Positions 11,324 through 64,000 of a stretch of 64,000 nt of DNA are shown in pieces. This stretch comes from Lepidodermella squamata (Eukaryota; Animalia; Gastrotricha), in assembly GCA_047495785.1 (NCBI GenBank), contig JBLDXI010000021.1, positions 1-64,000 on the forward strand. Direction: 5' to 3'. Below the pieces are notes generated by a model. The model was not told the origin of the DNA. It ran no database searches and worked only from the letters and a program-made list of their open reading frames with translations. The position numbers and the translations under genes were made by a program. Position 1 is the first letter of the stretch; every line of letters begins with the position of its first letter.

Positions 11324-14030
11324 TCACCGGGTCGAATCTACTTGTTCGTCTTTGCTATCGTCCTGTTGTTCAGTGTAGATCTGCGAAAGGGTTGTATCGT
11401 TCTTCTCGCCCGACTCTTGCTCCTCCAAAACTGTATGATTGCCATTATTCATCAAACGCTCATGTTCCGGGGAGAATTGATTACCGCCATTGCTGAGTGG
11501 GGTCGTTGTTCCGCCGCAAGTTTCAAGCGAAGGTCGTAGACTGTAGCTTCGATTTGCGAACGATGACTTGCTTGACGAATACATGCCGCCGCCATTTTGA
11601 TAACGACTTGAATTTGATGATTCTGTAGAAGCCATCGAGACTTTTTTGTATATGTTGGAATGTACCGGGAAGCGGCCTATTGCCGACTGAGTTCGCATCG
11701 CCTTGTTAGCCTCGCCGTTTCCGTTGTTGAGATTGTTTTGCCACGCGGGCCCGCTGATGGAAGGCCGGGAGCTAATTGAAGTCATTGCAGATTCATCCGC
11801 TGAATAAGCATTGGCTTTGCTAAAAGAGATGTCAAACGTTTCAAAAAGGATCAAATGATGGATGGAGGTGACTTACTTGCAGGTAACTATGGCGACTAGT
11901 TGCATACGTACTCGACTGAGACGAGCAGCATAAATTATAGGGTTGATTAAAGGCGACAGCATAAGAAGGCTGAAAACCCGAAAAACAACAAATTAGAACC
12001 GTCTTTCCTGAAACTTTTTCTAGTAGCATACTCTCCCGCGTTAGCTGTTATGTCCCAACACTTTTAAAACTTCTCACCTATTAAAGAAGCAGTTGATAAT
12101 TAGCATCTGAGTGTTTTCAACACTGCCTGCCCCGGGAGAATTAGATGAGTCATTATTAGGATTCGCATTCTCCGCCGTATGCCCACTGACGGGTGCTGAC
12201 GTTCTCGCCCGAACCAGCATCAACAGCTCAAAGGTGACGAAGGGCATCTAAAATCGATGAATAAAGCGGATTAGACCTTTCATAATAAGAGTCACTGAAT
12301 GGCACTCACCCAGCAAAACGTGAAAGAGCCGATGAGAAGCAGTGTCGTTAATACAAGGCGTTTGGTATTACGCTCTGCTGAGTCTCGCCGGTTCATCACT
12401 TCGTAAAAAATGCGGCCGTAGATCACGAGAAGGAGGGCATACAACGGAATTGTTAGCCCTATCACGAAAAATTCGACACCAAATTTGTTCGACGAGTAAA
12501 ACGAGCACCAATCTTCCGGTTCTTGCTGTAATAATGGAAATATAACCTATTTTTCGATTGATGGACTCACGTGATTACTTACATCTACTTCGACGAATTG
12601 GAGAATATCGTGGATGATTTGATGTAACTGAAGATCACCACTTCCGTCCCCCACCCTATAGATTGAATTATGAGCAATGAATCCGGGGCAAAAAAGTCAG
12701 ACTTACGTGGATGTTGTAGGCGGGGCTAGGGTTGTTGCAGAAGCGGATCGTCTTGAACGAGTTACGAACATCAAACTCGGCTTTTTGGAAGACTTGCCGC
12801 GGGCAGCTTTCACCGAATGCTTCGGCGTAGAAGTCACTAGCAGAGATGGCCGTTTCGTTGTCGCTCTTGTCGGCTTAACCGTAGTGACAGGAGGTAATGT
12901 TGTCGTTAAATCATAATCCTCTTCAGATTGTTGCGCTGAGTCACTATAACTTGCGTAGTTGGATCTTGAACCTGCGCCAATCGAAGAAGCGCTCGCAACA
13001 GGCGGAGGACGGGAGCGAGTGAAAAATGATACAGCTGTTATCGGTGTGTCAATGAGACTGAGCACAACAGATAGAATCCACAGGCATACGATGACGATTT
13101 GCGTTCTTCTTCCGCTCATAATCTGTAGAGATGAATCAATAAAAAACGATTAACACAACCGCTTCCGCGTTTTTTTCGATCCGGATGAACTTAATGCAAT
13201 CTTAGAGGTCAAAAATCAAAAACAGGAAATGCCTCGATTTTGGCTCAAGGTGCCAAAAAATAAACATCTAGTAAGAAGAAATGCATAAATTCACAAGACA
13301 GATTTCTCAGAATGATGTATCAGCTCAAAAATCGATAATCGTGTCTCGTTGAATTGAATATGAGATTAACTCGAGGAAAACGTCTCACCGTATTGTAACG
13401 AAGAGGTTTGAAAATTCCTAGGAAGTTGTCAGCCGTAAGACCACCAATACTGAGCAAACTGGAGAAATAGCCGAGGAGGGTTAAGCTTCTTAGAAAGTTG
13501 TTGCCACACTTCTCCAACATGGGCAATTTGAACCGCTCAGCGACGTTTTGATGCGTGAAGGTGATGATGGTTGTCGAAGCCATTAGGATATCGGCCGCCG
13601 CTAGACTGAGTAAGAAACGCCGGTAACCATGTAAGGCAAGCTTGGTTCTAACGACCGCGGCCATAATGAGGCAATTCGAAATCAGAGCTAGTATAGACGT
13701 GCAGATATCGACGATGACAAAGCCGCCACGTGGGCCTTGGAAAACTGAGGAAAATGCGTAGCTGGAGACGGAGTCTGAGCTGGAGACAGCGCCGCCAGAC
13801 GACGGCGCCGCAGAGACCATCGCACTTGGCAGGTAGAGGCGGAATAGCGCGTCAGCCGAGGCGAGAACGTCCGGCCTGTGACCAGATCGGGATGAATCAG
13901 TTAAATTAACAGCTAATAATTTCGCATTACTTGCGAAACCTAATTTCAGCGTATTGTCTTGATGCATTTTGAAGAACGAAAATGGATGAAAGACTACATA
14001 ATCGCAAGCGGGGGATAGAACTGCATTCAT
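11324..14030 (-). CDS. Orphan class A GPCR paralog GPCR-A; exons ?-13389, 13122-12707, 12655-12583, 12525-12310, 12247-12078, 11969-11877, 11819-11324 (start ATG uncertain)
   Basis: LSLAAADILM (TM2), LTADNFLGIFKPLRY (TM3), FCW|MPF (TM6), SPLINPIIYAARL (TM7). All six introns are GT-AG with matching phases. Ser/Asn-rich tail with no zinc finger. Confidence 0.88.
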
Positions 14031-46468: not shown

Positions 46469-47308
46469 TTAGCTCTTGTCACCCTCATCAATGATTTTAT
46501 TTTCACTACTATTATGACTGCTTCGTTTTATGAGATGCCGCTTCAATTCTCTCAGGCCTTCAAACTGCTCGTCGCACTCCGGGCATTTGTACGGCTTTTC
46601 CGACCCGGCAATAATGATGTTATTCCCATTCAATTGATGGGAAGCTCGGTGGTATAGACATGTTGATCTGTTAGAAAAACGAGCCGGGCAAATCGTGCAA
46701 GCAAATGATTGAATGCCAATGTGGGCAAGTTCGTGGTGGCGAAAATTGCGGCGATCACGAAATACTCGGCCGCATTTACCGCAGGTAAACGTGGCCCCAA
46801 CACCATGTTGAAGTCTGCCGTGGGCCTTCAACTCACGCTGGTTTTTGAAAACCAGACGGCAAACTGCACATTGAAAATTTGCAATAATCATATTGTGAAT
46901 AGGGTTAGTAGAGGGTGAATCAATAGTTTCATTTGAAACATTTTCGGATGAAGAACTCGGCTGAGAAGATGACGCGGTCATGTTAGCAAACCACGGATGT
47001 TGGAATAACGAGAATTGCGGTGGTAAAGCACCGACCTCAGGTACCAATCTGTAATTATAGGAAGAGAAATAATTTTAATATGACTGACGAGGAAAATTGA
47101 TTTACTGTGAATCGCGGGTATTTTTCGTTGATAAATCAAGAACAGTTTCGTGTCCGTTAGCAACGAGAGATGTACTTTTACTGCCCATGGTAAGATCCAG
47201 CGTTGATGATTGTTGCTGATCTAGTTCCCAAAACTTCTTCAGCAATAACGGATAGGCCATTTTCAGAATATCGAGGTTCGGTTCGAGAGAATTCAACGCA
47301 GGAATCAT
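46469..47308 (-). CDS. C2H2 zinc-finger protein ZF-A, about 260 aa (3 canonical fingers plus 1 degenerate); exons 47308-47106, 47048-46469
   Basis: CAVC..H..H, CGKC..H..H, CTIC..H..H, EKPYKCPEC. N-terminal TLDLT and VLDLS motifs. 57-nt phase-2 intron. Confidence 0.85.
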
Positions 47309-48075
47309 TTTAAAAAATCAGCAAAATTATTTAAACTCTAAAATCATATAATTTAAGGTGGACTTTTTATTAAGAAAAGGAAGGTTTATTTTAAGCATTC
47401 CTGCTATCATTACACATCCGTTTTTATGTATTGATGACCTCGTAAAAGTCAACACGTGGCCACGTCCTGATTGCCTGCCGCGTTGTTATTGTTATTGAAT
47501 TTTTGGTAGCGCGGTTAACCTGAAAATCTGCCATGTATGCACGGGCGCGTGCCTGGTGGAATAAACACCCGACAAATTGCGCAACACTTCGTTCGTGTTG
47601 TTATTTTGGTACCGGCCAGCGCAATTAGACCGCCGCAATATCGAAAACACGAATCGCAAAAACTCAAGAGAAAATTAGAAAAGCCACGCGCGAGGCGAAC
47701 TTTCGACAATGCAAGTTTATTGGCAATATATGAACAACAGCAATCAATTCACGAGAACGGCGAAGTTTAACAAAACTTGATTAATTAAAGTATATACAGA
47801 AGGCCTTGACAAATATAATGAGAGCTAGTGGTGAATATGCAAATTTTACACAGATAATGAGCAGTAAATAGCGAGTATTTGGGTGATATCATTTTCTTGA
47901 GAACGACGCGATAATATACACAATTTGAGCATTGAAGCAAACCAACTTGAAAAAATATGAAAATTTTCCTGGGAAAACCCAGGTTTACAATCAAAAACCG
48001 GGGATTTCATGCATCCAAATTTTGAAGGTTGAAATTTCATAAGCAGATATATACAAATCGAGAAACATCGAGTTT

Positions 48076-49504
48076 TTAAAAGTCGTCGTCGATTTCAATA
48101 GGCACGGCGTTGTCGGTAGAGGTCTGAAAATAAATTAACAAATTAATTAAAGTCTGGCAGAAAATAACGCAACTAACCAAAAACTGCACGTGGCCGATGT
48201 TGTGCCGCGGGTTTGACAGGTTTAAAACGTCGTTTTCATCGCAGTTCGGTTGCGGCTCTTCAGAGATGCAGCTCGACGACGACGACGAATTGGTCGCTGA
48301 ATCAGTGTCGTGGCAGATGACGTAGTGCTCCTCCAACTCGTCGATAGTCGCGAATTTTTCAAAGCAGAAATAGCAAGCGACTGGCGGCTGCGGGTGGAAA
48401 GCGATCATGTGCGAGTCGTAGGCGGCTGAAGTCGTGAAACGGAAGCCGCACTGATCGCAGGTCGGCACCGTAGCCATCAGCGATTGCGAGGCAGCTGGGC
48501 CGGCGCTGGTTGACGGTCGCTCGGTCGGTTCATCGTGTTTACGCAGCTCAGAAGCGGCGGATTTCGAACGAGGGCGGCCGCGTTGCGATCGGCGAGCCGT
48601 GCCGCGGCGTTTATTAGTACCGGCGACCAGGTGAAAGCGAACGTGGCGGTTGAGTGCTGATTGGTGGACGAATCGCTGCTTGCAGAACGAACAGCCCAGT
48701 GGACGGTTTGCAACGCGATTACGCGGCTCGCTTTCAGCCTGAATTTCGCAAAAAAATGTAATAATTCAGTAAAAATTCATTTGAAATGCAAGATTCACTG
48801 AGATGAACAATGATCAACATATGATAATTATTCAAAATTAGCTTGAAATTGTTAGAAAAGTCATTTTTAATTAAAAATTAATTTTAAAATTTTAAAAGAA
48901 TTCAAAATTTAATTTAATTTAAATTCAAATTTTAAAATTGAAAATTAAACAAAAATTGTAAAAATGATGATGTTCGCTTTTCCAGGACAACTTTTTCCAG
49001 AACAAGTAAACAAGTACGAAGAATAAATATTAAAAAAAAACCCAGGATTTTTTTGTCTCAACTTCCTCAGATCAATGTACATTATTTGGTGAATTTGCGC
49101 GAGAATGAATAAATAATTACCTGTACTGGCTTAGGATGAGCGGCTTCGATGTGTTGATCCAGCAGCACTTTTCGGGCAAATCGCGCGAAACACGTCGAGC
49201 ATTCGTAGGTTCTGTTATCGCCATGCATCTGGCGATCGTGTTCGTACCATTCGCCGAAATCGGGAAACGCCGGCCGCGGGGACGGGCAACGCTCGCAGCG
49301 GAACAACAGATCGTCGTCGAGCCGGCGACCGCGGTGTCGCGGCGGCGAGTGGTCGCCCTGGTCAAGGCCCGTCAGGTCGATTGGTTCGCTCTGCTCGACG
49401 AAATTAGCCGCCTCGACTAGGATGTCCATCAACGAGCTCGGCGTGGAGAGTGGCGAGACCAGAGGCGGTGGTTCGACTGGCGTAGATGGCGAAACGACGT
49501 TCAT
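48076..49504 (-). CDS. C2H2 zinc-finger protein ZF-B (5 fingers plus AT-hook); exons ?-49121, 48738-48178, 48123-48076; true start uncertain (possible extra exon 50222-50194)
   Basis: CERC, CSTC, CSFC, CDQC and CYFC fingers; QRGRPRSK AT-hook; EPIDLT motif. The start of the middle exon is in frame with track ORF 48076..48477. Confidence 0.8.
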
Positions 49505-50379
49505 GTCCGAAATCGACGCCGAGACCGTGACAGCCGGCGGTTGCCAGTTGAGGCTGAAAGTTCCCAAATCGCCATTGACAGACGAACTCTGATACAACCA
49601 AATAAAAAAATAATAGGTAAATAAATTTAAAAATTTAAAATAAAATGAGATGAAAAATGGCGGGCCATTCTAAATTTAAAATTCAAGCACTAGATTTTCC
49701 TAAAATATGGTTTTCGACCTCACATCTTCCCTAAAATCTGATTTTTTTGTGGTTGATTTTCAAATCAAATTGGAAAAATGTAGAGCCTAGACGTCCAGCT
49801 TCAGAGCTAGAACGTCCAAAAGTGGTGCTTGAAATCTTTCGACCCAAAATAGCATATGAATTCACGTACTTAAACGAAAAGCAGAACAAATTTCGGGTCA
49901 AAAAAACGCAGATTTATCGCGTGAAGCAACAAAAAAACTATTCGGCCTTAAATTAAAAAATGTGACAGACAAATAACAAATTTCGAAGCGGCGGCTGCGC
50001 AGTGAAGTAGAAAAAAACGTTAAAACAAACCACGTGATTAGACTGGCGGCTGAGATCATTCCAGGGCATTACAATAGGCTGGCCAGTGGCCGCAAGTGCG
50101 AAAACGTTCGAGTTGGAAGACACCGACGCAACCTAGAAAAAAGAGACAAATAAACCACAATTCTGGGGGTCATCGTACTAAAAAAAAAATCACCTCGTGA
50201 GCAGTGTGTGGAAGACGTCCATGGGTCATCACGAATTGATAACGCACCATATCGAGAAACGAAAGCATTGATATTCAGCGGGCGAGAAAAAAACAACAAT
50301 AAAAACACTAAAAATTAACAAAAAATATTTATTAATACATTTTATTTACATTATATAATACAATAATTTGAGGAGATTT

Positions 50380-50901
50380 TCAGTAGTTGCGGAAGGTGGG
50401 CGAGGAGGCGCTGAGGACTGAAGCCATCGCGAAAACAGTAGCCATCAACTCGGCGGCGGTGAGGACGAAAATCGCTGGCTGGCCAGCAGGCGGCGGGACG
50501 GTTTCAGAATCGCTGAAATTCGGCTGAGATGGCGAAACTTGCTGCGGCGGGGGTGAAATGGTCGGAGCCGGGCTCGACTCGCTCATTCGGCTGATTTTAC
50601 CGGCGTGAAAACGCGACTCGTGGCGCTTCAGGCCGTTGATCGACAACAGCGAAACCGGGCAGAACTGGCATTGAAACCGCTGGCGTTCGACTTTGTGCGT
50701 GGCGCGGTGGGTTCGAAGCGACGATGGGTTCTGAAAGTTTTTCTTGCACAAGTCGCACTTGAACGCGGCGGAGTGAGCGAGGCGGTGATAGCGGAGAAAC
50801 TGGCGCGAGACGAACGTTTTATCGCACAGGTCACATGGAAATCGATTCGAGTTCGAAATCGATGAATTGATCGAAGAGTTGCTCGTAGAAGACCGCTGCA
50901 T
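50380..50901 (-). CDS. C2H2 zinc-finger protein ZF-C, 173 aa, 3 fingers, single coding exon
   Basis: FPCDLCDKTF..L.YH..AH, FKCDLCKKNF..L.TH..TH, FQCQFC..L.RH...FH. Confidence 0.85.
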   Translation of the reverse strand: MQRSSTSNSSINSSISNSNRFPCDLCDKTFVSRQFLRYHRLAHSAAFKCDLCKKNFQNPSSLRTHRATHKVERQRFQCQFCPVSLLSINGLKRHESRFHAGKISRMSESSPAPTISPPPQQVSPSQPNFSDSETVPPPAGQPAIFVLTAAELMATVFAMASVLSASSPTFRNY

Positions 50902-51321
50902 ATTGAAAAATCAAGCGCGAGAAATATACTTAATCACAAGTCGTAAATTGGTGTTAATGAAGTGATAAGAGCGATGATCTCTGTGTTATTATCGTGTGCG
51001 GCACCTCTTCTTCTGATGATGATGATACCTTGTGTGCGGCGTGTGTGGGTAATAAAAGTGCCGGTGTCTGTTGTGCGCGCTTGCGCAAGTGCGCGGAGTG
51101 CGCGGGTAATAAACGCGCCATCACCGGGGTTAGAGCCGAGGTTACGCGAGGCGGAGCTGTGACATGCCGCCGCGGCGTCCGCATCGCCTTTCATCTTCGG
51201 CTTGATTAATTGACTCAGCTATATCTCATATTAATTACGATATCCACCGCGATCTTAAATTACGCAAATCAACGATAATTTTATTCAACTTCGAAAATAA
51301 ATGAAAATAAAATAAAATAAA

Positions 51322-53886
51322 TTAAACGTTGGTCGATGCTATTGAAAGCGAATATTGGTCGCCGAGTGCGACTTTCGTTCTGGATACCAATTGAGATTGT
51401 GCGACTGATGGGCGGGTCAAAGCGATAGCGCTAACGTTATACGAGTTATTTTTGTGCATTGAGCCCCTGCGATTAAAATTGAAAATTTGAAAAATTTCAC
51501 ATTTAAAAATTATCAATTTTTTTACCTGAATTTACAGGTCAAAATGGCGTAAAGTTGATGCCTCACTCTCGGCAGGCGAGCGGCATATATGATAGGATTG
51601 AGCAGTGGTGAAAGCATCAAAAGACTAAAGAAAAATCGGACAATTTTCTGGAAAATTTGACCCGGGCTGAGCTCTCACCTGTTGAACACCGAATTGACCG
51701 TGAGAAGTCCCTCTGTCTTTTCGATTAAGCGAAAATTCGCAGTAGACATCAGGACATCGGTGAGACGTTCGTCAAGATTTTGCTGCTCCCAATGTGTCCG
51801 TAAAAACATGAACAGTTCAAACAGTACAAAGGGCATCTGCGAAATCAAAACAAAACATAATTATCAGCCTAGAAAAACATGATGTTGCGCTTTTACCCAA
51901 CAAATTGTGAACGATCCAATTAGCATCAAAGTCGTGAGAACAAGGCGCAGTGATACGTTCCGGTGCTTGATGCTATGCGTCGTTGAAGAGCAGTTTGATA
52001 TAGTGTCATCGGCCATGTTGTTAGTGCTACTACACGGCGGTATTAGCGAGGAGAGAAAAACGCACTGATGGGGCGCGGTATTGTCATGGTCGGCCTGGGA
52101 GGTGAAACGCCGCCGTCGTGATCTGATTGATCGAATTATCTGACTAGCGTGAGGTCGGCGCATAACTTTAACGAAAATACACCCGTATATCGCGAGGACG
52201 AGAATGAAAATCGGAATTGTAAGCCCGATGACGAAAAACTCGACGCCGAACTTCTCGGCACCGAAAAATCGACAAATGTGGTCCTTGCGCTGAAATTCGA
52301 ATGCTTCGATAACTGCTGATATCAAATCGTGCATTTGCGTGCTCCTATTTTCAGAATGCTCCGACGAGCCCGGACCAATGATGCTTCTGAAAAAATTGAA
52401 AAATTGATTATAATTAATTTTCGATGTTCCATCCTTTCTTGTTTGATGATTTGTAAGGCCTATGTTTAGTAATTTAGCTAAACGATACCCCATGAACGAA
52501 TTGAAATTTTCTTCGTTGGTTTCCTAAGCTGCTAATATCGGAAAAATCAGGGATTTTTAAAATCGATTACAGAAATCGATATCGATTTTACAGGGTTGAA
52601 TATAACCAATATAAGCGCAAAATACGCATAATATTATCATCCTAACTGCTAAGCATGTTAATAAAGAAATTTTAATTAGGACGAAAAATTCGAAAACCCA
52701 TAGATTGAATAATTTTCGAGCTGGAACTCATAATTTAGGGTGCGTACTGGGTACGGCCATTAAATTTGAAAATTTATCATGGAATTTCACCAATTTGGAA
52801 ATTATTTTATATCCTAAGCATTTCACTTTATCCGAGTATTTTCGATTTAAAATACATTTTTCAATATGGGAAAATCTATAGCCTTTGATATATTCCTGGA
52901 TAGAGCTGGCTAACGGAAAAATAATGGAAAAATCTCGAGGTAATATATAAGGCGAATTTTCAGATTTTTTTTTGCCAATAATTAGAAATTGAGCTAAAGA
53001 TTTTTAAAATGGAAAAAATATTGCCATACCTGTTTGATGAAGTAGGCTCATCGATTATTGGAAGAGCCTCGGTGAAAGTCAAATTTTGGTCAATTTCTTC
53101 GGAAATCTTACGCGAATTTCCATCCGTTGAAAACACTTGAGCAGGCTGATCTGGATAACCTTGCGGCATTGATCCCTTAATTTTGCTTCCATGAAAGGCA
53201 TAAGTTATTATTGAGCAAATAGTATCGGCGAATCCGAGGCCAAACGCAGCGACCCAAACTAGGGAAATCGTCCACCTCAACCTTCGACACGACATCAGAG
53301 ATTGATAGCGAAGTTGCTGAAAGACGCCGATGAGGTTATCGACAGTGAGCCCGGCGATGCTGAGCAGGCTCGCGACATAGCTGACCAGGGTCAAACACCG
53401 CAGAACGACATTTCCGCAGTGTTCAAACCCGCCTGATTTGAATGAGCGGATGAAATTCTGGTGGAAAATTGTCAGCATAACCGTGCCTGCCATGAACATA
53501 TCAGCGGCGGCGAGGCTCAGCAGAAAGCGGCGATAGCCGTTCAGGGTTAACTGAGTCCGATTCAGGGCGAGTAGTACGAGGAGATTTCCGATAAAAGCTA
53601 GGCAACTCGTTAAAATGTCAGTCACCACAAAATTCCCACGGGGTCCATTTAGCAAAAACGTGGAAGTCTCATCAACTTGAAATGTAGGCGATTGCATAGC
53701 GGAATTCATATTGGCAAAATCGTCGAAAAATAAGGAAGAATTGGCATCATCCATGTATTTTTCGAGTATAGGATAGGTTTCGTTCGAGGTGTTATCGAAA
53801 TCGTCCATCAAGTTGTGGTCGCTCAGGCTTTCGAAGAAGGTATCGGCGCCATCCATACTCGGCTGATCATTAAAATAATCATTCAT
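51322..53886 (-). CDS. Orphan class A GPCR paralog GPCR-C, about 582 aa; exons 53886-53030, 52386-51897, 51836-51679, 51624-51526, 51466-51322
   Basis: LSLAAADMFM, LTVDNLIGVF, ICW|MPF, SPLLNPIIYAARL. Short tail ending ...IASTNV*. Minus-strand AATAAA at about 51283. Confidence 0.9.
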
Positions 53887-56212
53887 TATTTTCGCGTTTT
53901 TCTATGACAAAAAGCAAGCTCAAATTTCAAATGCTGTATATTTAAGATTAATAATGACATTCCTAATCTAAATTTGGGCGTAGGATAGGCAATTAAATTT
54001 TATGACAAATTGACGCAACAGTAACCGTCAATGTAGGGACGCCTGCGTGGTAATAAAGGTGACACATGAGCTGAGCGAAAGGCGTAAGCCACTATTTTTA
54101 CACAGCCTGATGGATTCGTTTATGGCTCAGACAATTACCATCAGCTGGAAAATTGAATAGCAAGAAGACAGTGTGAGATGATTTAAATTATGAATGTCCT
54201 CTCAAAATCTAGAATGAATATGACAAGTTGGAACAAGTTGGAACATTCTAAGGCAGGTATATCAGTGAGTTTGGCATATAGTTCGCAATAAATAAACTCC
54301 GAGTTACCTTAAAATTCATCTATAGATAGCATCGATAGTTAATGAGTGCGTGGCATTACTTCCATTATGTGCACGGTGAAAGGCGTTAATTGGAATAAAA
54401 AGTCGGGCAAATTCATTTAAATGGTCGCAAATTTTGCTATGAGGCGAGATTTCTCAACTTGTTTAATTTCCTATAATATTGTGAGCCTATTTGGACGGTG
54501 AACGCCTGATTGAATCTCCTGGGGATAACGTGATTATTTTCGGAGATAACCTATAGAAAAATCTATTGCTATATTTTCAAGCGAGAATTATTGGGAATAT
54601 ATAGCTTTTCCTCTGTCGCCCAAATGGAGACAGAGTTAAAAATCGCTCAAATTTGATGCTGAACAAAAAATCGAGTTTGGAATGTGATTTCATGGACAAA
54701 GTGGCCAGGAAGCTTCAATGAAGGGTATAAGCTGAAACATGTGCTAATTAACTAATTAACGATTAAACTTTCCCCTGAAAAAAGATTGAGAAAATGTCTT
54801 AAATGAGCAAGATTTAAGCAATCATGGATGGCACAGAGTACACAAACTATATTTCCCTGCGTGATCGTATATGAACCAATGTTTCCTATTAAGTCATATA
54901 AGAATACAGGATTGTTAAGCCCATCGTCTTTGCAAGTGATATTGCAAGCTAGTTTTATTAATGGAAATACGATAATAGAAACGCCGCCTTAAATTAATCG
55001 CTTTTCTGCTTTTCTTATTTAAACTTTTCCGTATCCTGGTCGGTTTCAAAGTCGCGGAAAAATCTGGGGCCCTGTGTATTTATTATCGTGATTATAAGGC
55101 TTAGAAATCGGAAATCGGATCCTCTTACAGTATAAACGTGGATTAGCGATTTGGATTTTATATAATGAATCTGACCAAGTATATCGATTGAATGAGCTGA
55201 ATTAGCCTCGAGATTACATTGAGATTAGCGGTGTAGCGAGGTCTCCCTTGATTTTTCAAAACTGTGAATGAATACCTTGTGACGGCAAGCCGAATAAGTA
55301 GCCAGCACAAGTTACAAGCGCCCGATAGGCGAGCGCAATTATAACTTGGAATTCGAGAAAGGTGGCGCAAGATCATCGCTGCAATGTTCCGGGGATATAG
55401 ATAAAACAAGCCTGCTCTTGATGAACTCAGTTAATGAGCTTCAGCAGTGGAAATGCTAGTATAAAAAGCCAAAGCACGGTTACTCATCGCAGAAATCTAT
55501 AGCTGTGACAGGTGTGCGGGGACTGGCGAAGCTCAGTGTACCATGCATCACCTTTACACTTAGTAATAGATAGGTATCAATACTTATTAATGTCGCCACA
55601 ATAGACGACATTATTTCAACTGTCGCATAGACATCTATTGGGCAGGGTAAGCAAAGCAAGTGAATAGTTAACCTAAATTGTCTCATACATCTAGGCTCTC
55701 TAAGAATGTAAGTGTTCTCACCCGATTGATCTGTCTTAATCGCGGAAAACGGATACATTACAATCACGGAAACCTAGAAGTTGGGGACGAGAATTCTGCA
55801 AAATTGATAACTAATAAAAGGTGATACAGCTGTCGATCTTTTGACTTATGATCACTGATGAGCATACGTGGGTAAATTGTTTGTCTGCTAGTGAGCGCAA
55901 TTTTTCGAGTATAGCTGCCAAAGTTGTGGATAAGCCATTTCCACTTTTAGAAAAAATGTAACGAAGTCATGTTTTCTAGGCTACTGGCGCGTTTTCTGCC
56001 AGTTTTACCTGGTCCGGGATGCGTCATCTGAAAAAATTGACTGACACGATGGAAAGTGATATTAATTCTTTGTCGCAATATTTTATTCTCGAGAAAAAAT
56101 GCCCTCATAACGGATGTAGAACACTTGAGATCAATTCAGCTTTTTTGATTTAATTAAACTCGAATTTCAGTTCGAATCATTATCGTCTGAATTGCAGCTT
56201 CGCCGGATGATT

Positions 56213-59200
56213 TTATTCCTCGGCAAGTGACGTCAAAACTATCCCGGTGATAGTTTGCCTTCGTTTAGCTTTTTTACGGTCCTTTCGTTCGTCGCGACCA
56301 CGGCGTCGTTCCACCGAACTACCGTACGATAAGCGACGAACTACGCCTGCTTTACATTGCTGCAACTCGCCATCGCTGACCTATAAAAATTGATAAACGC
56401 ACATTTGACCCAATTTAAATGATAATGCGCGTGCCTGACCTTGTGTTCAGAAAAATCGGCCAGGAAACTTCGAGATCTTAATGGCTTCTGTTGAATTTGC
56501 AGCTTTTGATCGTCCGAAACAGAAGCGCATCGCATTTTATTCGGATCAACAATCAACGGCCGGCTTTCGACCGACAGAAAATTGCCGGACGAATTTTTAA
56601 CCACCGGTAATTTCCCATTTTGCTTCACCGGGGTGTCATTTTCGGGTTTAATCGGTTTAACAGGCAGACTAATTTGCCGATCGACGCTATCACGGCTCTC
56701 GTCATCAGCAGCTTTTTGATGAAGCACTTTCGCCGATGAGCTCATGTCTAGCTTGTTCGGCGAATCTGGCCGGTTGCAACACTCGTGGCCGTTTTCGCGG
56801 TAGTAAACTTCAAAGCACTCGTCGCAGACCGCAACTATGTCGCCGTGTTTACCGGTCACGTGGCGGTAGAACGCGGCCTGGCTCAAAAACAGATTATCAC
56901 AGCCGCGGACGTGGCAGCGGTATTCAGGCTTCTGCGAGGCAAGTGCCGCGTTTCCGGCAAAAATCGCCGATCCATTCGAGAAGGAACCACTCGGCGAAAT
57001 GCGAATGCTATTCGTCGCTGTTAAGGTGGATTTGTTATTCGAGCCTGAGAAGGAGAAAATGCTGTTGTTGTGGTGAGGTCCCATTAGATAGGCCGATGGC
57101 GACGGTGACAGCAAGTTGCCACGGGGTGTCCCTGGGGGTGACAATATCGAGGATGAATTTCCGTAGGCTGTTGAGGAATTGGTCGAGCGAGTTGCGCGAA
57201 GTGAACTGTGACCGTTGCCGAATGTTCGAGACATGGTCGAACTGATTTCGAAGTTACTAGCATTGGCATTGCGATTAGGCATCGAACCGAGTGGGAAGTG
57301 ATTTCGAATTCCGCATAATATACCCTGGCCATCCTGTTTCTCAGCAGAGCTATGCCGCTTCCATTTTCTGGAAATTTTAAAATTTAAAATTTAAAATAAC
57401 AAAATTTGAAATTTCATACTTATTTCCGCAGGTAAGGATGATGATGAGTTGCAAGCGAACTCGAGGCAGTCGGCTAGCGAAAATGATGGGGTTGAGGAGG
57501 GGGCTCAGCATGAGCAGGCTGTTGAATATGGTATTAACCAGCAGTGCTTGGTTGGAAGAGGTGTACTGCGATTTTTGTGACGAATCGCCATTTTTCGACG
57601 GATCGCCGGTTAAATGCGACGTTTTCAGGTACATGTACAGCTCAAAGCAGATGAAAGGCATCTGAAAAAGAGTTTATTATAAAGCCAAGCATGGAAGTAA
57701 AAAAAATATTTACAGAAGGATTTCCAATTTGAACTTCCAAGCCGGTATTTCCTAATTTATAGTAATTAAATTAAATCTAATTACCCCACGAAAAGGTCTA
57801 ACAGCCGAAAATGCGAAAATTCGATTTATGAGTGGTCGCATTTTGGGACATCAATTCTTATTTTCCCAGCATGGTCCATGGCCAAATAACTACTAGTCGT
57901 GGCTTTTATGGACAGTCCGTTATATTTTAATTTTCGATAAATGGCCTCTGATGTCAGGTGTTTATTATCCCGAGTCCTCAAGAGTTGACGTAGGTAAATT
58001 TATAACGCGAAAGTGGAAAATTTAATTAGGAAAATTGGAAGCGAATCCGCAGAAAATGTTCCAAATAATTAATATCAATCAAAATACAAAGCAATAATAT
58101 TTTATCGGGCCAAGGGTTTGAAGCACGGAAGGATAATAGGGACCAATATACCTAGTAAACATTTCAAGTAAAACTCCACCCACGTGTCCTGGACAAGTTT
58201 TCGTTTACAGAAATTTAGAAAAATTGTGATTGATTGGAACATAATTATTATGACTATGATTTCCTGATATTTCGGAGAATAAATGGATTTTACCCAGCAA
58301 AATGTGAAAGATCCGATGAGCAGCATGGTAGTCAGAACGAGTCGAACCGTTTTCCTCTGACGATTTGATCGCCTGCGAATGACTTCGAGCACGATACGGC
58401 CGTGAATTGCCAATAGCAGCAAGAAACACGGCACAGTTAAGCCGATGACGAAAAGCTCAACTCCGAATTTATTAAGCTGGTAATACGTGCACCAGTCTGA
58501 ATATTCCTTCTCCTCGTCGATAAGTTCTAACACGTCATGAATGAGGTCGTGCAAGTTGAAATCTTCGCCGGACAATTCAGCAGATGATGAGGCAAATAGT
58601 CCAAATGTTGATGAATTAGAAGGCTTGGATGTTGACGACGTCGAACGGAAAGGTTTTGAATAATTGGAGTCGGGATCATCGAAAGACCTTAAAAATATTA
58701 ATAAATCGTTTTAAAAATAATTTTGAAATTTTTTCTAATTTTCATTTTATAAAATATTAAGGAGACCCACCTGGCTTTTCTAGAAATTTTTTCTAGAGCT
58801 AACTCTTCATCGAAACTTGCGGAAAAAACCGTGTAAGCTTGAGCATTGTGGACCGGCGTTGTAGTCTCATTCATGATCAAACCGGCTGTTGTGATATTCA
58901 CATTATTGGCAACTGGGTGTTTTGTAAAGAACAAGGCGAATATTCGAGAGGCAGATGATTCAACTGTTGTCTGTGCCGTTGTTGTCGTAGATGTCGTAAA
59001 AGATGTCGCGAATCTTGCTGAGGAGGTTGTCATATCGGCTTTATTACTTGATTGGTACAAGTAAATTCCGAATGTTATCGGTAGATCTATGAAGCCTAGC
59101 GTTAGGGATAGCGCCCAAAGCCCGGCGATTGCTCGAATCAAACGGCCACCGGACATAAGCTGTCGAAATAAAATTAAAATTAATCAATCAGCTATCAGTT

Positions 59201-60336
59201 TCATCAATATTCACAAGTGAATGATTCATAGCTAATACCCGCCGATAACCGCGAATTTGTCCAAATGGTAAACGGCCTTGGCGCTTTACGAATGAGCTCA
59301 AAATGTGCTAATGGGCTAACCAGGCTTGATAATGATAAAATAAAAAATAAAAAATGAAAATTCGAGTATTGAAAATATGGGGGTCGCGTGGAATCGAACC
59401 CGAGGCGCCCACAAACCATGTCATTTTCACGCGAAAAACCAAAAAAACTGTCCATTTTTACCCGTAGTGCAAAAAGTACAAAACCTACGAGGAAACGGAT
59501 TGCGCCATTCGAAAGAGCGGGGCCGATTACCCACAGTGGAGAAACTGGTTTTATTCCGATTTTGCGAGATTCTCAGAGTTGGATAAATCTCGAAAAGTCG
59601 GAATCTCGAAAAAAATTTTCCGCGCGCAGGACGATTTAAATGAGTCTAGATTTCCGTTTCTTTATCATTTTTAAAACTTTTAAAAATTATTGACTGGAAA
59701 TTTTTCGATTTTATATTCCGAATGAAACCTGCTAGTTTTCGAACACCCGATTGACGAAATCCAGGTCGTTTTTCGTACACTCCCTCCGCGGTGTTTACAT
59801 ACCCGGATTTCCCATCAGACGGGAAATAAGGTGACGGGGATGAAGGTTCCACTCCTTTTTTCTAACCGACTTACCGCGTTGTATGACAGAGGTCTGAAAA
59901 TGCCGAGAAAGTTATCAGCCGTTAACCCGGCTATGCTGAGCAGTGACGCAAAGTAGCTGATAAGTGTTAGCGATCGCAGGACGTTATTCCCACACGTTTC
60001 AATCAACTGAAACGTGTACTTGCCCGACATGCGTTCGTGGCTGAAAGTTAGCACGGTTGTTGAGGCCATGAAGATGTTGGCAGCAGTCAAGCTGAGCAGG
60101 AACCGCCGGTAGCCAGCCAGGGCGAATTTAGTCTGCGTCACTGCGATGACTATCAAGGTGTTGCTGAGCAAGGCTAGGACTGATGACACGATGTCGGCGT
60201 AGATAAACGGAGTGCGCCACATGAAAACTTCGCCGTCTTTCGTCGATGGGGGTGTCAGCGAGAGTACAGGCGGTGTTGTCACGAGGGGCATCATCGTCGA
60301 TTGCCTGCCGTGGCTGCTAATGAAATCAACCGCCAT
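56213..60336 (-). CDS. GPCR-D: 7TM receptor fused to a C-terminal zinc-finger tail, about 860 aa; exons 60336-59875, 59159-58771, 58687-58294, 57661-57420, 57367-56440, 56380-56213
   Basis: Same family motifs. The 52-nt phase-2 intron 57419-57368 joins ...NPIIFASRLPRVRLQLIIILTCGNK to KWKRHSSAEKQDGQGILCGIRNHFPLGS-MPNRN..., in frame with track ORF 56341..57282. Zinc module at 56922-56776. The last exon encodes ...RRRGRDERKDRKKAKRRQT...EE*. Confidence 0.85.
59203..59545 (+). repeat. Dispersed repeat, copy 2, in GPCR-D intron 1
   Basis: Collinear similarity to 25530-25845; starts with the ATTCAC-AA-GTGAAT palindrome. Confidence 0.8.
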
Positions 60337-62432
60337 CTCTCTGCTTGTGCGTGATTTTTAAATTTTTCGCAAAATTATTATCTCCAGCATGCAAAAAACG
60401 AACGCCGTTCGACCGATAATAATCGCGTCATTTTTTTTAATTAACCTTATCCGTCTAAAATCATCGGAAAATTTGTGTACAATAAAACTTAGGAGTATAT
60501 TGTCGGAGTGTAACTTTTGGAAGCTATTTAAAATTTTAGTTGAGGAAAAAATGGACATTAAAAAGTAATGGGAAAAAATTGTAATTCTCAGGGGTCTTTC
60601 TCAAATAATTTTCAGGTGTAGAAATTATGGTCCTAAGAGATCAAAGCATGGCCGAATTTCACACCGGACGAGAATGCTTTATGGTTTAATTGGTTAAAGC
60701 TTTTCCAACACTTGAATAGAGGATAAAATTGCCCGATTTTTCGAGCCTTTGACTATGGCTTAGGAAATTAAATCCGGAAAATCCGATGCGTAAATTTTTG
60801 CCAGGGCGTCGTATCGTACATCTAAAGGAAATAATATGATGAAGAACCAGGTGCTCAAGGCACAAAAATAACTACAAGTGAGCTTATTAAGCAGAGTTGT
60901 CAATTGTCACGTGACCTCGTAACCTATATCGGTTATTTTGTCGCTAAAAATGTTACTTGCATAGTATATGACGTAGTATGACCACAGCATTTTTTTTAGG
61001 AATATTATATGCTTTTATAAGGCTCTGTAATTTATCGTAATAATTAAGCACTGGTTTCTATGTCGGAATCGCGCTTGGGTGAACGCACATGACCTGAAAA
61101 GCTCAACTTGAAACCGACCAAGCGTACAGTCGTGCCTGATATGAGGGAAAAATCGAAATTTTTTATTACAATAGCGAGCAGTTATATCATATTCCGCCTC
61201 TTCAGGGGACACTATTAGAAAAATCTTCCGATAATGATATTCAGAGCTATCATTGCAGCGACCACTTGCGCCCAAAAGGCGAGAGCAAGTCGATATATAT
61301 TAGAGAACGAAGGCTATTAATAGACCGGGGGGAGTGCTCGAGATGAGACATTCATGCAATTTTTTCGCCTAAATTGCCTGATTGCAGGCGAATGATATCG
61401 TTGCCTTCGCGCGAATATAATGCATTACATCGAATGTAGAAGAATGTTTATAATAAGGCAGCACTACTTATAAACGATGATGAAGACTTAGTCTTATTAA
61501 TCGCGCGCGTAAGCAGCTTGTGTTAGGGACTGCTAAAAAATTCGATACGTAATATTCAAGCGAAACTTCATTAGGGTAGGCACAGGTGCGAAACTTCAAG
61601 CCCATAAACATAGGTAAAAAAAAGTCGTGCGCGCACGAGTTTTTTCGATAATAAATAAAAGACACATACATTCAAGATTATAGGGTGATACAAAACTGCT
61701 GTTAGGATTACCTGGCAATATCAGCTCGTTAATCAAATGAGTATTTTTAGTCACATGAACTCGACTGTTATTCAATAATTCTGCGCATCTAACTGAGCGT
61801 CAGAATTTTATCAGAAAATGTGTTATGAATAACGCAGGGCCAAAAGTTGGTCAGGCGATTGTTTGAATAAGACCATCATGATATGAGCACATGTATATCG
61901 ATTGTGAGCGGAAAATCGAATACAACAACAGTTTGGAAGCGCAAAATTATTATCATTGCATTTCAGCACCTGTTTTTATTAAAAAAATACGCGGGTTTTT
62001 TTTCGCTCGAAGCCTGGTAGATAAATAAACACGGATAACAAAAAAATAACAAATCCCATCTTTCTACCTTAGGTAATATCATTTCGGCTAAAAATAAGTG
62101 TAAAACGTCGGTTAAACATGAAAAATTTGAAGGATGAGTTCGAACATAGACTCGCCTTAATAAGCTAATTAGAACGAAGCGCTATTTTTACTGCATAACT
62201 TGAACTAGCCACCTGATAGCAGCATAATTTAATAAAAAAAAATCGATTTGCGACACAGATATTCGGCGGAAAATATTTTCGCTAATTTCTAAAGGAATTT
62301 AATGTCAAAGACAACGCCTACATTAAAACCATCCTAGATATTGCCAAATCATTTTTTTATTTTCAAAAATAATATTATTTTGGCAAGATTTGCTCGCGTC
62401 AACTGTTTTTTAGTCTTTATTCCCTATAATTA

Positions 62433-64000
62433 TCAGATGATGACGTAGACAGTTCCAGATTTAGCGGCATCGTTCTCGTCGAACGAGCCGAGCCGCCGCG
62501 GGAAATCGTCTTCATCACCAGCGAGATCGATAGGCACATTCGGATCTGTCTTCCTAAGATTACAGCTGTAAGACCGGAAAGCCGGACTTCTCAGCCCGAT
62601 CGACGATTCCACTAATGATTCATCAGTTTTCGAGCCAGAATTCCTTATTTGACTCGTATTTGTTGCAGTCGTGGTTGTATTCACGTTAATTGAACTCGCA
62701 ACAAGGCTTTCCTCCTCGATTTTAGCTTCGCTGCTTTTATTGACGATGACCTCCTTTTGAGGGCAATCGTGTTCGCCCTTGTCTAGGTAATAAAATTGCG
62801 AACATTGCTCGCAAATTGCGACAATATCGCTGTGTCGCATTCGAAGGTGGCGATGAAATGCGTGCAGGCTAAGAAATAGGTCATCACAGCCGCGCACTGA
62901 ACATCGATAGTCCGGTTTTAAATTCGCAACATTGCCAGCGAAAATTAGCGACTGCTCAAGCAATGAGACGGTCGCACTCGACGACGCGCGGAAAGAGACC
63001 GTAGTCGGCGCTAGGGATAGCGACTGCATGAGTGATCTCGGCGATGTCGGAGAATTGCTAGAAGCCGAGCAATTCCACATTGATCTAGAACTGTAGGTTT
63101 GTAGAACTTTGGACCGTAAGTACGATTTTTTTGCTGCTTTGAATGGCAACAGTTGATCACCCGCGGTAGGTGTTGTATTAGAAGTACTTGATTTTCTCTG
63201 CTTCTGTGATGCAGAGTGATAGTTGCTTCTTGAAGGCACGTAACTCAGATCAGCAAACCTCCTGTAAATCGGAAAGTGGATTAAAAAATTCATCAAAGCG
63301 AATTATAATCGAATCGATTTTTGGATTACATTTAAGTGTCTTTTGCCAAGTCCTTTTGATTAGAAATATTTTTTTAAATTTTCATGTTAAAATAAAAAAA
63401 AATTTAAAAATTAATGAAAATTCCTCAATTATGATAATTTTTTAATTTTTTTTATTTAAAAAGTAGAAAATAAAATTTTTAGATGATTTTAGAAAATTTT
63501 CTAAAGTTAATAAAATCAATTTAATAAAAACTAAAATCCAAAAAAATACTATTAAAAATAAAAAAAAATCCCCAACTCACTTTTGGCATGTAAGGATGGC
63601 GAGAACCTGAAGACGGACTCGGCGTAATCGTGTTGCATAAATGATAGGATTTATCAGCGGGCTCAGCATGAGAAGACTATTGAAAATTGTGTTAATTAAC
63701 AGGGCCTGATTTGAACTCGTCGCGAACGAATGCCGAGGTTCGCCTTTAAAAGTACTGCTGCTACGCGCCGATGTTCGAAGGTACATGTATAGCTCGAAGA
63801 TAATGAAAGGCATCTAAAATTTTGCAAACATTATTTAAATTTGTTTTATTTATTTTTCAAAATTTTTACCCAGCAAAACGAGAATGTGCCGATAAGGAGC
63901 ATTGTGGTTAGAACAAGGCGAAAAGTTTTCCGTTGCCTCGCCGTTTTCCGACGAGTTACCTTGACGAAAATTCGGCCATTTATGAATAACAGCAGCAAAA
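62433..64000 (-). CDS. GPCR-E: 3' part (TM5-TM7 plus zinc-finger tail); exons >64000-63870, 63813-63581, 63261-62433
   Basis: RLVLTTMLLIGTFSFCW|MPF...SPLINPIIYATRLRRVRLQVLAILTCQK|RFADLSY.... The phase-2 intron 63580-63262 is in frame with ORF 62433..63296. Zinc module at 62909-62763. Confidence 0.85.

Follow-up and report, generated by a model that had tools for sequence, protein, structure and literature searches.

The cytoplasmic tails of class A G-protein-coupled receptors (GPCRs) usually count as disordered strings for phosphorylation and arrestin docking. Receptors that carry an additional intracellular domain in the same chain have been described as GPCR-bigrams and GPCR-kinases in oomycetes, amoebozoans, choanoflagellates and sponges (PMC6033456, PMC5784254, PMC12716839). 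By definition, a GPCR-bigram combines a seven-transmembrane (7TM) domain with a catalytic accessory domain, namely PIPK, INPP, AC, PDE or kinase (PMC6033456). Zinc fingers are not mentioned in that paper, and the phrase 'zinc finger' is absent from the choanoflagellate paper. Here we describe two neighbouring receptor genes, GPCR-D and GPCR-E, at the end of a 64,000-nucleotide stretch of the Lepidodermella squamata genome (contig JBLDXI010000021.1, positions 1 to 64,000; hereafter the window). What is new in this locus is a class A receptor with an intracellular zinc module that is under selection. Our full-text searches of the literature turned up no report of a zinc finger in the tail of a 7TM receptor. 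An earlier note on this DNA had claimed that no such family was known, and within the scope covered this holds: neither the literature nor a profile search of 1.84 billion proteins revealed a described family with this architecture.

The central observation is that the receptor and the module of GPCR-D are encoded by one spliced mRNA and belong to one polypeptide. The evidence comes from a public sequencing run (X1), the record of which only guesses that the material was RNA. Since X1 depth lies on the GPCR-D exons and is essentially zero across the long introns, and since its contigs are joined exactly at GT..AG, we take the run to derive from transcripts. Its contigs skip all five predicted introns of GPCR-D (59159/59875, 58687/58771 after a shift of the cut, 57661/58294, 57367/57420 and 56380/56440). 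The 52-nucleotide (nt) intron at 57367/57420 is bridged by a contig of 249 nt, 76 of them on the tail side, which thus joins the helix-8 exon to the finger exon. Likewise, the contig over 56380/56440 shows that the small last exon is real. The X1 contigs give no isoform proportions, and a minor intron-retaining, tail-less form of GPCR-D beside the spliced one is possible.

GPCR-D occupies positions 60336-56213 of the minus strand, and its six exons join into an in-frame coding sequence of 2583 nt for 860 residues. The window itself is eukaryotic in character: its G+C content is 41%, several of its genes have multiple exons, and the introns are short and AT-rich with acceptors of the TTTCAG type. 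Exon 1 (59875-60336) contains the start codon, the N-terminus and transmembrane segments (TM) 1-3, with DNF replacing DRY. It is joined in RNA to exon 2 (58771-59159), which encodes TM4 plus the initial portion of a long, Ser/Thr-rich extracellular loop 2 and has RNA joints at both ends. The end of this loop, TM5, a short loop 3 and TM6 (FCW) are found in exon 3 (58294-58687), and TM7 (NPIIF) and helix 8 in exon 4 (57420-57661), which ends in phase 2 after the helix-8 Cys. Across the 52-nt GT..AG intron (57368-57419) and in frame with exon 4 follows exon 5 (56440-57367), the cytoplasmic tail, composed of a Ser-rich linker, the zinc module and a second linker. A 59-nt intron separates it from exon 6 (56380-56213), which provides the C-terminus and the stop codon. 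Two RRx(S/T) sites and a basic cluster resembling a nuclear localisation signal (NLS) can be recognised in this last exon.

A hydropathy scan of GPCR-D detected seven hydrophobic segments (approximately residues 49-71, 79-97, 119-140, 161-188, 360-378, 398-423 and 459-477) and none in the tail after residue 477. The loop between TM4 and TM5 (58520-59090, residues ~191-326) is ~170 residues long, contains 35% Ser/Thr and bears N-glycosylation sequons. Seven segments and a sequon-bearing loop imply the usual topology, in which this loop is extracellular and the C-terminal 367 residues are cytoplasmic. With only 13% identity to its counterpart in the ortholog described below, the loop 2 insert resembles an extracellular, mucin-like stalk, an unusual feature for a class A receptor. 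Within intron 1, at 59322-59623, the depth of a DNA run (X2) rises to 4-7 times that of the surroundings (up to 609 compared with ~90), and many loose ends are seen. A dispersed repeat is the probable explanation; the tRNA search came out negative here and throughout 56000-64000, and an Rfam search of the window gave no match.

The same arrangement is found in GPCR-E, which is cut by the window end upstream of TM5. Its TM5-TM6 exon (63870-64000, minus strand), truncated by that end, translates in frame 2 into a TM5-TM6 peptide. The TM7/helix-8 exon (63581-63813, minus strand; Pfam 7tm_4, E 6.5e-3) ends in phase 2 after the Cys, and the tail exon (62433-63261, minus strand), which includes the stop codon, is in frame with it over a 319-nt intron (63262-63580). 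On sequence evidence, GPCR-E thus shares the phase-2 helix-8/tail junction of GPCR-D. This agrees with the earlier note, according to which the helix-8 exon of both receptors ends in phase 2 just after the Cys and joins the tail exon in frame, in GPCR-D via an intron of just 52 nt; the gene model and the X1 contig bear this out for GPCR-D, and the predicted exons (63813-63581 and 63261-62433) for GPCR-E. The note had proposed RNA support for junction 57420/57367 as a check, and the splice is seen in the X1 contig. It was also right in that reading through the intron leads to a stop: intron retention would terminate both GPCR-D and GPCR-E early, and the same is true of the paralog GPCR-C and of the GPCR-D ortholog.

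A second organism has preserved both the combination of receptor and finger and the phase-2 helix-8 intron. We searched 1.84 billion representative proteins with a profile built from the tails of GPCR-D and GPCR-E; of the four matches, P0001 (246 residues, E 8.7e-26) was the sole true relative, the other three being ordinary C2H2 proteins. ENA metagenome scaffolds are the source of P0001 and of three near-identical members of its cluster. One scaffold, L001, shows synteny with the window: a D-like receptor is followed by an intronless C-like receptor with a short finger-less tail and then by C2H2 genes that match window open reading frames (ORFs) at 46.4-50.9 kb. For the D ortholog on L001, four exons can be combined into an in-frame protein of 681 residues. 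The helix-8 exon of this ortholog stops in phase 2 behind a Cys-Cys pair and is connected to the finger exon by a GT..AG intron of 53 nt (L001 2237-2289), the counterpart of the 52-nt intron of GPCR-D. Two of the five GPCR-D introns, namely the one in loop 2 and the last one, are absent from the ortholog (L001 1334-1951 and 2290-3019), so that introns have been gained or lost between the two lineages and the helix-8 intron has stayed. GPCR-D and the ortholog also have in common a C-terminal RRQTI...SL.EE motif, i.e. an RRx(S/T) site with an acidic SL.EE. The basic NLS-like cluster is confined to the last exon of GPCR-D and is absent from GPCR-E and from the D ortholog. Other searches added no relatives. 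Scanning JGI metagenome contigs with back-translated peptides and with a 48-nt degenerate finger pattern, which does recover the window and L001-L003, gave no further match; a word-based homolog search with the intronless paralog returned its own cluster only; and no E ortholog was seen upstream of the D ortholog in the 1 kb of L002 covered.

The zinc module of GPCR-D (56779-56970, minus strand) consists of an SAIFAGN motif, a C2H2 finger (56845-56916) and a C-x2-C-x9-H-x-C knuckle (56779-56826). That of GPCR-E (62763-62951, minus strand) consists of an SLIFAGN motif, a C2H2 finger (62832-62903) and a C-x2-C-x10-H-x-C knuckle (62763-62813). Finger 1 is invariant in GPCR-D, GPCR-E and the ortholog, having the form C-x4-C-x12-H-x4-H with a hydrophobic core C-x3-F-x5-F-x2-H, which is the classical C2H2 spacing; the knuckle starts six residues past it. 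Overall, the tails of GPCR-D and GPCR-E are 35% identical, with identity concentrated in a single block: (S)xIFAGN, 6-8 residues, KP(D/E)YRCxVRGCDxLFLSxxAFxRHxxxxH, xDIVAxCxxCxxxYY and a terminal HxC. No variation is seen at finger positions Ser(-1), Ala3, Phe4 and Arg6 or in the RGCD turn, nor, in GPCR-D, GPCR-E and four ortholog variants, at the eight Cys/His residues that are the putative zinc ligands. The motif in front of the module is conserved as (S)x(I/M)FAG(N/D), its FAG core being identical in GPCR-D, GPCR-E and the ortholog variants. A degenerate DNA pattern of finger 1 has exactly 2 matches in the window, compared with 0 expected from 100 shuffles.

Searching PDB sequences with the module retrieved the tandem C2H2 pairs of ZNF410 (3.4e-4), YY1 (2.3e-3) and TFIIIA (5.4e-3), and in these alignments the second C-x2-C of the module falls where the next finger begins. 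AlphaFold2 models the module as a beta-beta-alpha finger (two short strands and an 11-residue helix) followed by a beta-hairpin, with a predicted local distance difference test (pLDDT) score of 66-83, the strands and helix of the finger scoring 70-83. When the whole 309-residue tail exon of GPCR-D is modelled, only residues ~147-200 exceed a pLDDT of 65 and the rest stay below 50, so the module is predicted to be the only folded island of the tail. Pfam detects no enzyme family in the GPCR-D tail, its only ordered part being the zinc module of ~55 residues. A feature search of the ESM Atlas gave just generic C2H2 clusters with scores reachable by chance. We infer from the ligand pattern that the module is a two-zinc tandem unit, the second finger of which is shortened to a C2HC knuckle.

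Between GPCR-D and its ortholog, identity is 62% in TM1-TM4, 59% in TM5-TM6, 68% in TM7-helix 8 and 64-66% in the zinc module, as against 22% and 14% in the tail linkers and 13% in variable loop 2. By these figures, conservation of the module matches that of the 7TM core, and the linkers have decayed. A more recent time scale is covered by X2, the DNA run of a closely related haplotype or strain, two contigs of which span the GPCR-D tail exon. They differ from it at 12 bases, and 12/12 differences are synonymous (~23% of tail sites are synonymous); two of the 12 jointly turn CTC into TTG, both Leu. Taking all listed X2 differences across the GPCR-D gene, 23 changed codons are synonymous and 1 is not. 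The synonymous-only differences indicate that the reading frame of the tail is under purifying selection now, and the region identities point to a constraint that over longer times is concentrated on the module. The ratio of nonsynonymous to synonymous substitution rates among L001, L002 and L003 was uninformative, as these sequences are ~99% identical. The analysis also bore out what the earlier note had read from the two tails, namely the quoted peptides, the spacing C-x4-C-x12-H-x4-H followed by C-x2-C-x9/10-H-x-C, the shared IFAGN motif, 23/36 identical residues and poorly alignable linkers; its claim of selection on the module is supported by both the region identities and the X2 differences.

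As to the receptor part, alignments identify GPCR-D, and sequence identifies GPCR-E, as melanocortin-like class A receptors. Single GPCR-D exons match Pfam 7tm_1 (exon 1, E 2.9e-5; exon 3, E 1.1e-3) with 24.1 and 19.0 bits, the cut-off of 30.5 being meant for the whole protein, and PF00001 is on record for pieces of the ortholog as well as the intronless paralog. Among solved structures, melanocortin receptors come closest; MC4R is matched with E 5e-9 by the intronless paralog and with 3.6e-3 by GPCR-D exon 1. GPCR-D has FCWMPF in TM6 and NPIIF in TM7, the latter being NPIIY in GPCR-E, GPCR-C and the ortholog, and the Cys of helix 8 aligns to MC4R. The E/DRY motif is absent: it is DNF in GPCR-D, paralog B and the C-like paralog of L001, DNL in GPCR-C and DNY in the ortholog (window 59875-59905 for D, 13320-14030 for B and 52960-53886 for C; L001 552-1028 and 3243-4502). 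Since DNF faces the DRY of MC4R in the alignment, this is a local receptor family without Arg3.50. In class A receptors no residue is more conserved than Arg3.50, which belongs to the interface with the G protein. Asp2.50 is replaced by Asn in GPCR-D alone, its relatives keeping the Asp.

The paralogs are also informative about the tail. GPCR-C (3' end, 51320-51870) likewise has a phase-2 intron just after the helix-8 Cys, but the tail exon behind it specifies 47 residues of unrelated sequence before its stop. Paralog B has a different tail again, with no finger. In view of these unrelated tails, the helix-8 intron has the appearance of a junction common to the whole family, beyond which the tail exons vary, GPCR-D and GPCR-E carrying the finger-bearing version. 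Fusion of GPCR-C to the C2H2 gene downstream of it was considered and rejected, as GPCR-C terminates at the stop of a separate tail exon of 47 residues, and the finger gene begins with a start of its own beyond a spacer of ~420 nt. The group of C2H2 ORFs downstream of GPCR-C (46469-50901, minus strand; L001 5166-6864) keeps its synteny in both organisms. It includes two finger pairs with H-x4-H spacing, one of which (48.3-48.46 kb) is acidic. Compared with these neighbouring fingers, the module scores 19.6 bits in BLASTP, and hhalign gives probabilities of 40%, 20% and 8% for three finger pairs; the two best pairs share H-x4-H, and one aligns without gaps across the six-residue linker. As unrelated human and yeast fingers are matched at least as well, the data speak neither for nor against an origin of the module by capture from the C2H2 genes nearby.

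What might such a module do? We give about even chances to a reading in which melanocortin-like class A receptors use the zinc module in their disordered tail as a fixed docking site for a cytosolic partner. In this reading, a single small folded island, a C2H2 finger plus a shortened C2HC knuckle that would bind two zinc ions, interrupts a long tail that is rich in Ser/Thr and disordered for the most part. The island may offer a fixed docking surface at which the receptor holds a trafficking, scaffolding or signalling protein, and phosphorylation of the Ser/Thr-rich linkers and of the conserved RRx(S/T) site would probably tune access to this surface. Given that the family lacks Arg3.50, it is tempting to speculate that some of the output which ordinary class A receptors deliver through G-protein coupling may pass through the module. 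The net charge of the module is -2 to 0, as opposed to +10/+11 in the classical three-finger arrays nearby; this near-neutral charge, the single complete finger and the unconserved NLS-like cluster favour protein docking over sequence-specific binding of nucleic acids. The earlier note had proposed a receptor with a built-in effector, of which the single gene product, the conserved arrangement and the selection on the module stand, the effector function itself being conjecture. Of the two possibilities it raised, the evidence tends to favour a Zn-dependent module for protein interaction and weakens the cleavable nuclear tail, the basic cluster being unconserved.

Several results weigh against the docking reading. 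Pfam searches with single exons and with 77-residue modules gave no significant zinc-finger family: the GPCR-D module has no match at E <= 10, and the GPCR-E module stays below the gathering thresholds of zf-C2H2_4 (10.9 bits, cut-off 27) and FOXP-CC (14.4 bits, cut-off 28.9). Fold searches with the module, a check put forward in the earlier note, ranked tandem C2H2 fingers at the top, none of them significantly (Foldseek E of at least 1.4; VIA-align best Z 2.9). Zinc binding is deduced from spacing only, the partner in the docking role is hypothetical, and the link to the loss of Arg3.50 is speculative. Furthermore, the conservation statistics stem from two lineages and few sequences, and RNA support for the junction is available for GPCR-D only.

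Other explanations keep the module as a functional part of the receptor. It might have a structural role, either folding back on the cytoplasmic face of the receptor, as an autoinhibitory element or a replacement for the G-protein interface, or dimerising receptors, in each case recruiting no partner. The missing Arg3.50 and the strength of conservation, equal to that of the 7TM core, would fit, and the FAG motif and module, placed at variable distance from helix 8 on flexible linkers, could reach the core. However, paralogs B and C share the DN(F/L) core and have no finger, which means that the core does not need the module, and we consider a purely structural role unlikely. Alternatively, the tail might be a receptor-tethered nuclear signal that is cut off after activation or endocytosis, with the finger fragment entering the nucleus and acting on chromatin or RNA. 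There is a precedent in the Frizzled 7TM tail, which is cleaved and imported (PMC7944400), finger 1 has the C-x4-C 'YxCxxxGC' form of the DNA-binding YY1, ZNF410 and TFIIIA, and the last GPCR-D exon with its basic NLS-like cluster is spliced on in RNA. Yet there is just one intact finger beside a truncated one, the charge is -2 to 0 next door to classical arrays of +10/+11, the basic cluster is missing from GPCR-E and the D ortholog, and no conserved cleavage motif was recognised; a nuclear role therefore seems distinctly unlikely. We are just as doubtful about a broader proposal, that a lineage which lost Arg3.50 signals via the tail finger, be it as an attached adaptor for a G-protein-independent complex or as a releasable nuclear fragment.

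The remaining explanations deny that the module works as part of the receptor. A piece of a zinc-finger gene might have been exonised into the tail through exon shuffling at the helix-8 intron and be carried along as a functionless, neutral passenger. The paralogs do share this intron and carry unrelated tail exons, the same strand has C2H2 genes at a distance of 5-10 kb whose synteny is conserved, and the module faintly resembles the H-x4-H finger pairs encoded there (hhalign 40% and 20%). A passenger would, however, hardly have kept all eight ligands in GPCR-D, GPCR-E and the ortholog, nor a module identity equal to that of the 7TM core in the midst of decaying linkers, nor a tail in which 12/12 differences are synonymous. 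As the likeness to the neighbours is also no higher than to unrelated C2H2 proteins, we regard a neutral passenger as very improbable. Finally, the finger exon might be part of a separate gene that lies downstream, in which case the spliced form would have arisen by rare read-through or as an artefact of assembly. In favour of two genes one could cite the early stops that a retained intron gives in D, E, C and the ortholog, the AT-rich 319-nt intron of GPCR-E with its AATAAA, and the silence of the contigs on isoform proportions. Against this, introns of 52 nt in GPCR-D and 53 nt in the ortholog are too small for a terminator plus a promoter, the X1 contig is spliced across the site exactly at GT..AG, the intron phase is kept in D, E, C and the ortholog, and the tail exon has no conserved upstream in-frame start of its own. 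Two genes are thus scarcely credible.

Elsewhere in the window, a single-exon cytochrome P450 gene (17105-18667) has its best annotated relatives in a rotifer, a nematode and ticks, at 28-30% identity, and unannotated metagenome proteins reach 43-49%. The genome seems to come from an animal lineage that has been sampled poorly, and the receptor-finger family is so far known from two poorly sampled organisms.

A selected, zinc-stabilised fold in a class A tail would be a new kind of wiring from receptor to downstream components, found here in receptors without the canonical Arg3.50. The conserved phase-2 intron after helix 8 appears to allow the receptor family to swap tail exons, as the unrelated tails of B and C illustrate. 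Should loss of Arg3.50 and signalling through the finger prove to go together, this would be a type of receptor-effector fusion not described for animal GPCRs. The module lends itself to testing, being ~55 residues long and having eight obvious ligand residues.

In comparison with known systems, the receptor part of the GPCR-D family is closest to melanocortin-type (MECA/alpha-group) class A receptors such as MC4R, with which TM1-TM4, TM6 (CW.PF), NPxxY and a helix 8 ending in Cys can be aligned. It differs from MC4R in the replacement of Arg3.50 (DNF/DNY/DNL), in the Ser/Thr-rich insert of 130-170 residues between TM4 and TM5 and in the tail of 370 residues with the zinc module, and its identity to any solved receptor is low. 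The module shares with classical tandem C2H2 fingers (YY1 fingers 1-2, ZNF410, TFIIIA) the spacing and core of finger 1, the short linker and a second C-x2-C hairpin, and a beta-beta-alpha fold is predicted for it. Unlike them, it falls below Pfam thresholds, its second unit is shortened and has no predicted helix, and its charge is near zero; moreover, it sits in the tail of a membrane receptor, whereas classical C2H2 fingers are found in soluble nuclear proteins. With the Frizzled-2 C-terminus, which undergoes nuclear import (PMC7944400), and with Notch, GPCR-D would share the principle that the intracellular part of a receptor could itself be the signal. This analogy is functional only, and in GPCR-D, unlike in Frizzled-2 or Notch, a cleavage site, a conserved NLS and a nuclear partner were not seen. 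In overall layout GPCR-D resembles the GPCR-bigrams and GPCR-kinases, with an N-terminal 7TM domain and a folded (here predicted) C-terminal intracellular domain in one polypeptide. However, the added domains of those fusions are catalytic and their 7TM part is not of the animal rhodopsin-type class A, whereas GPCR-D adds to a class A receptor a small, non-catalytic zinc module.

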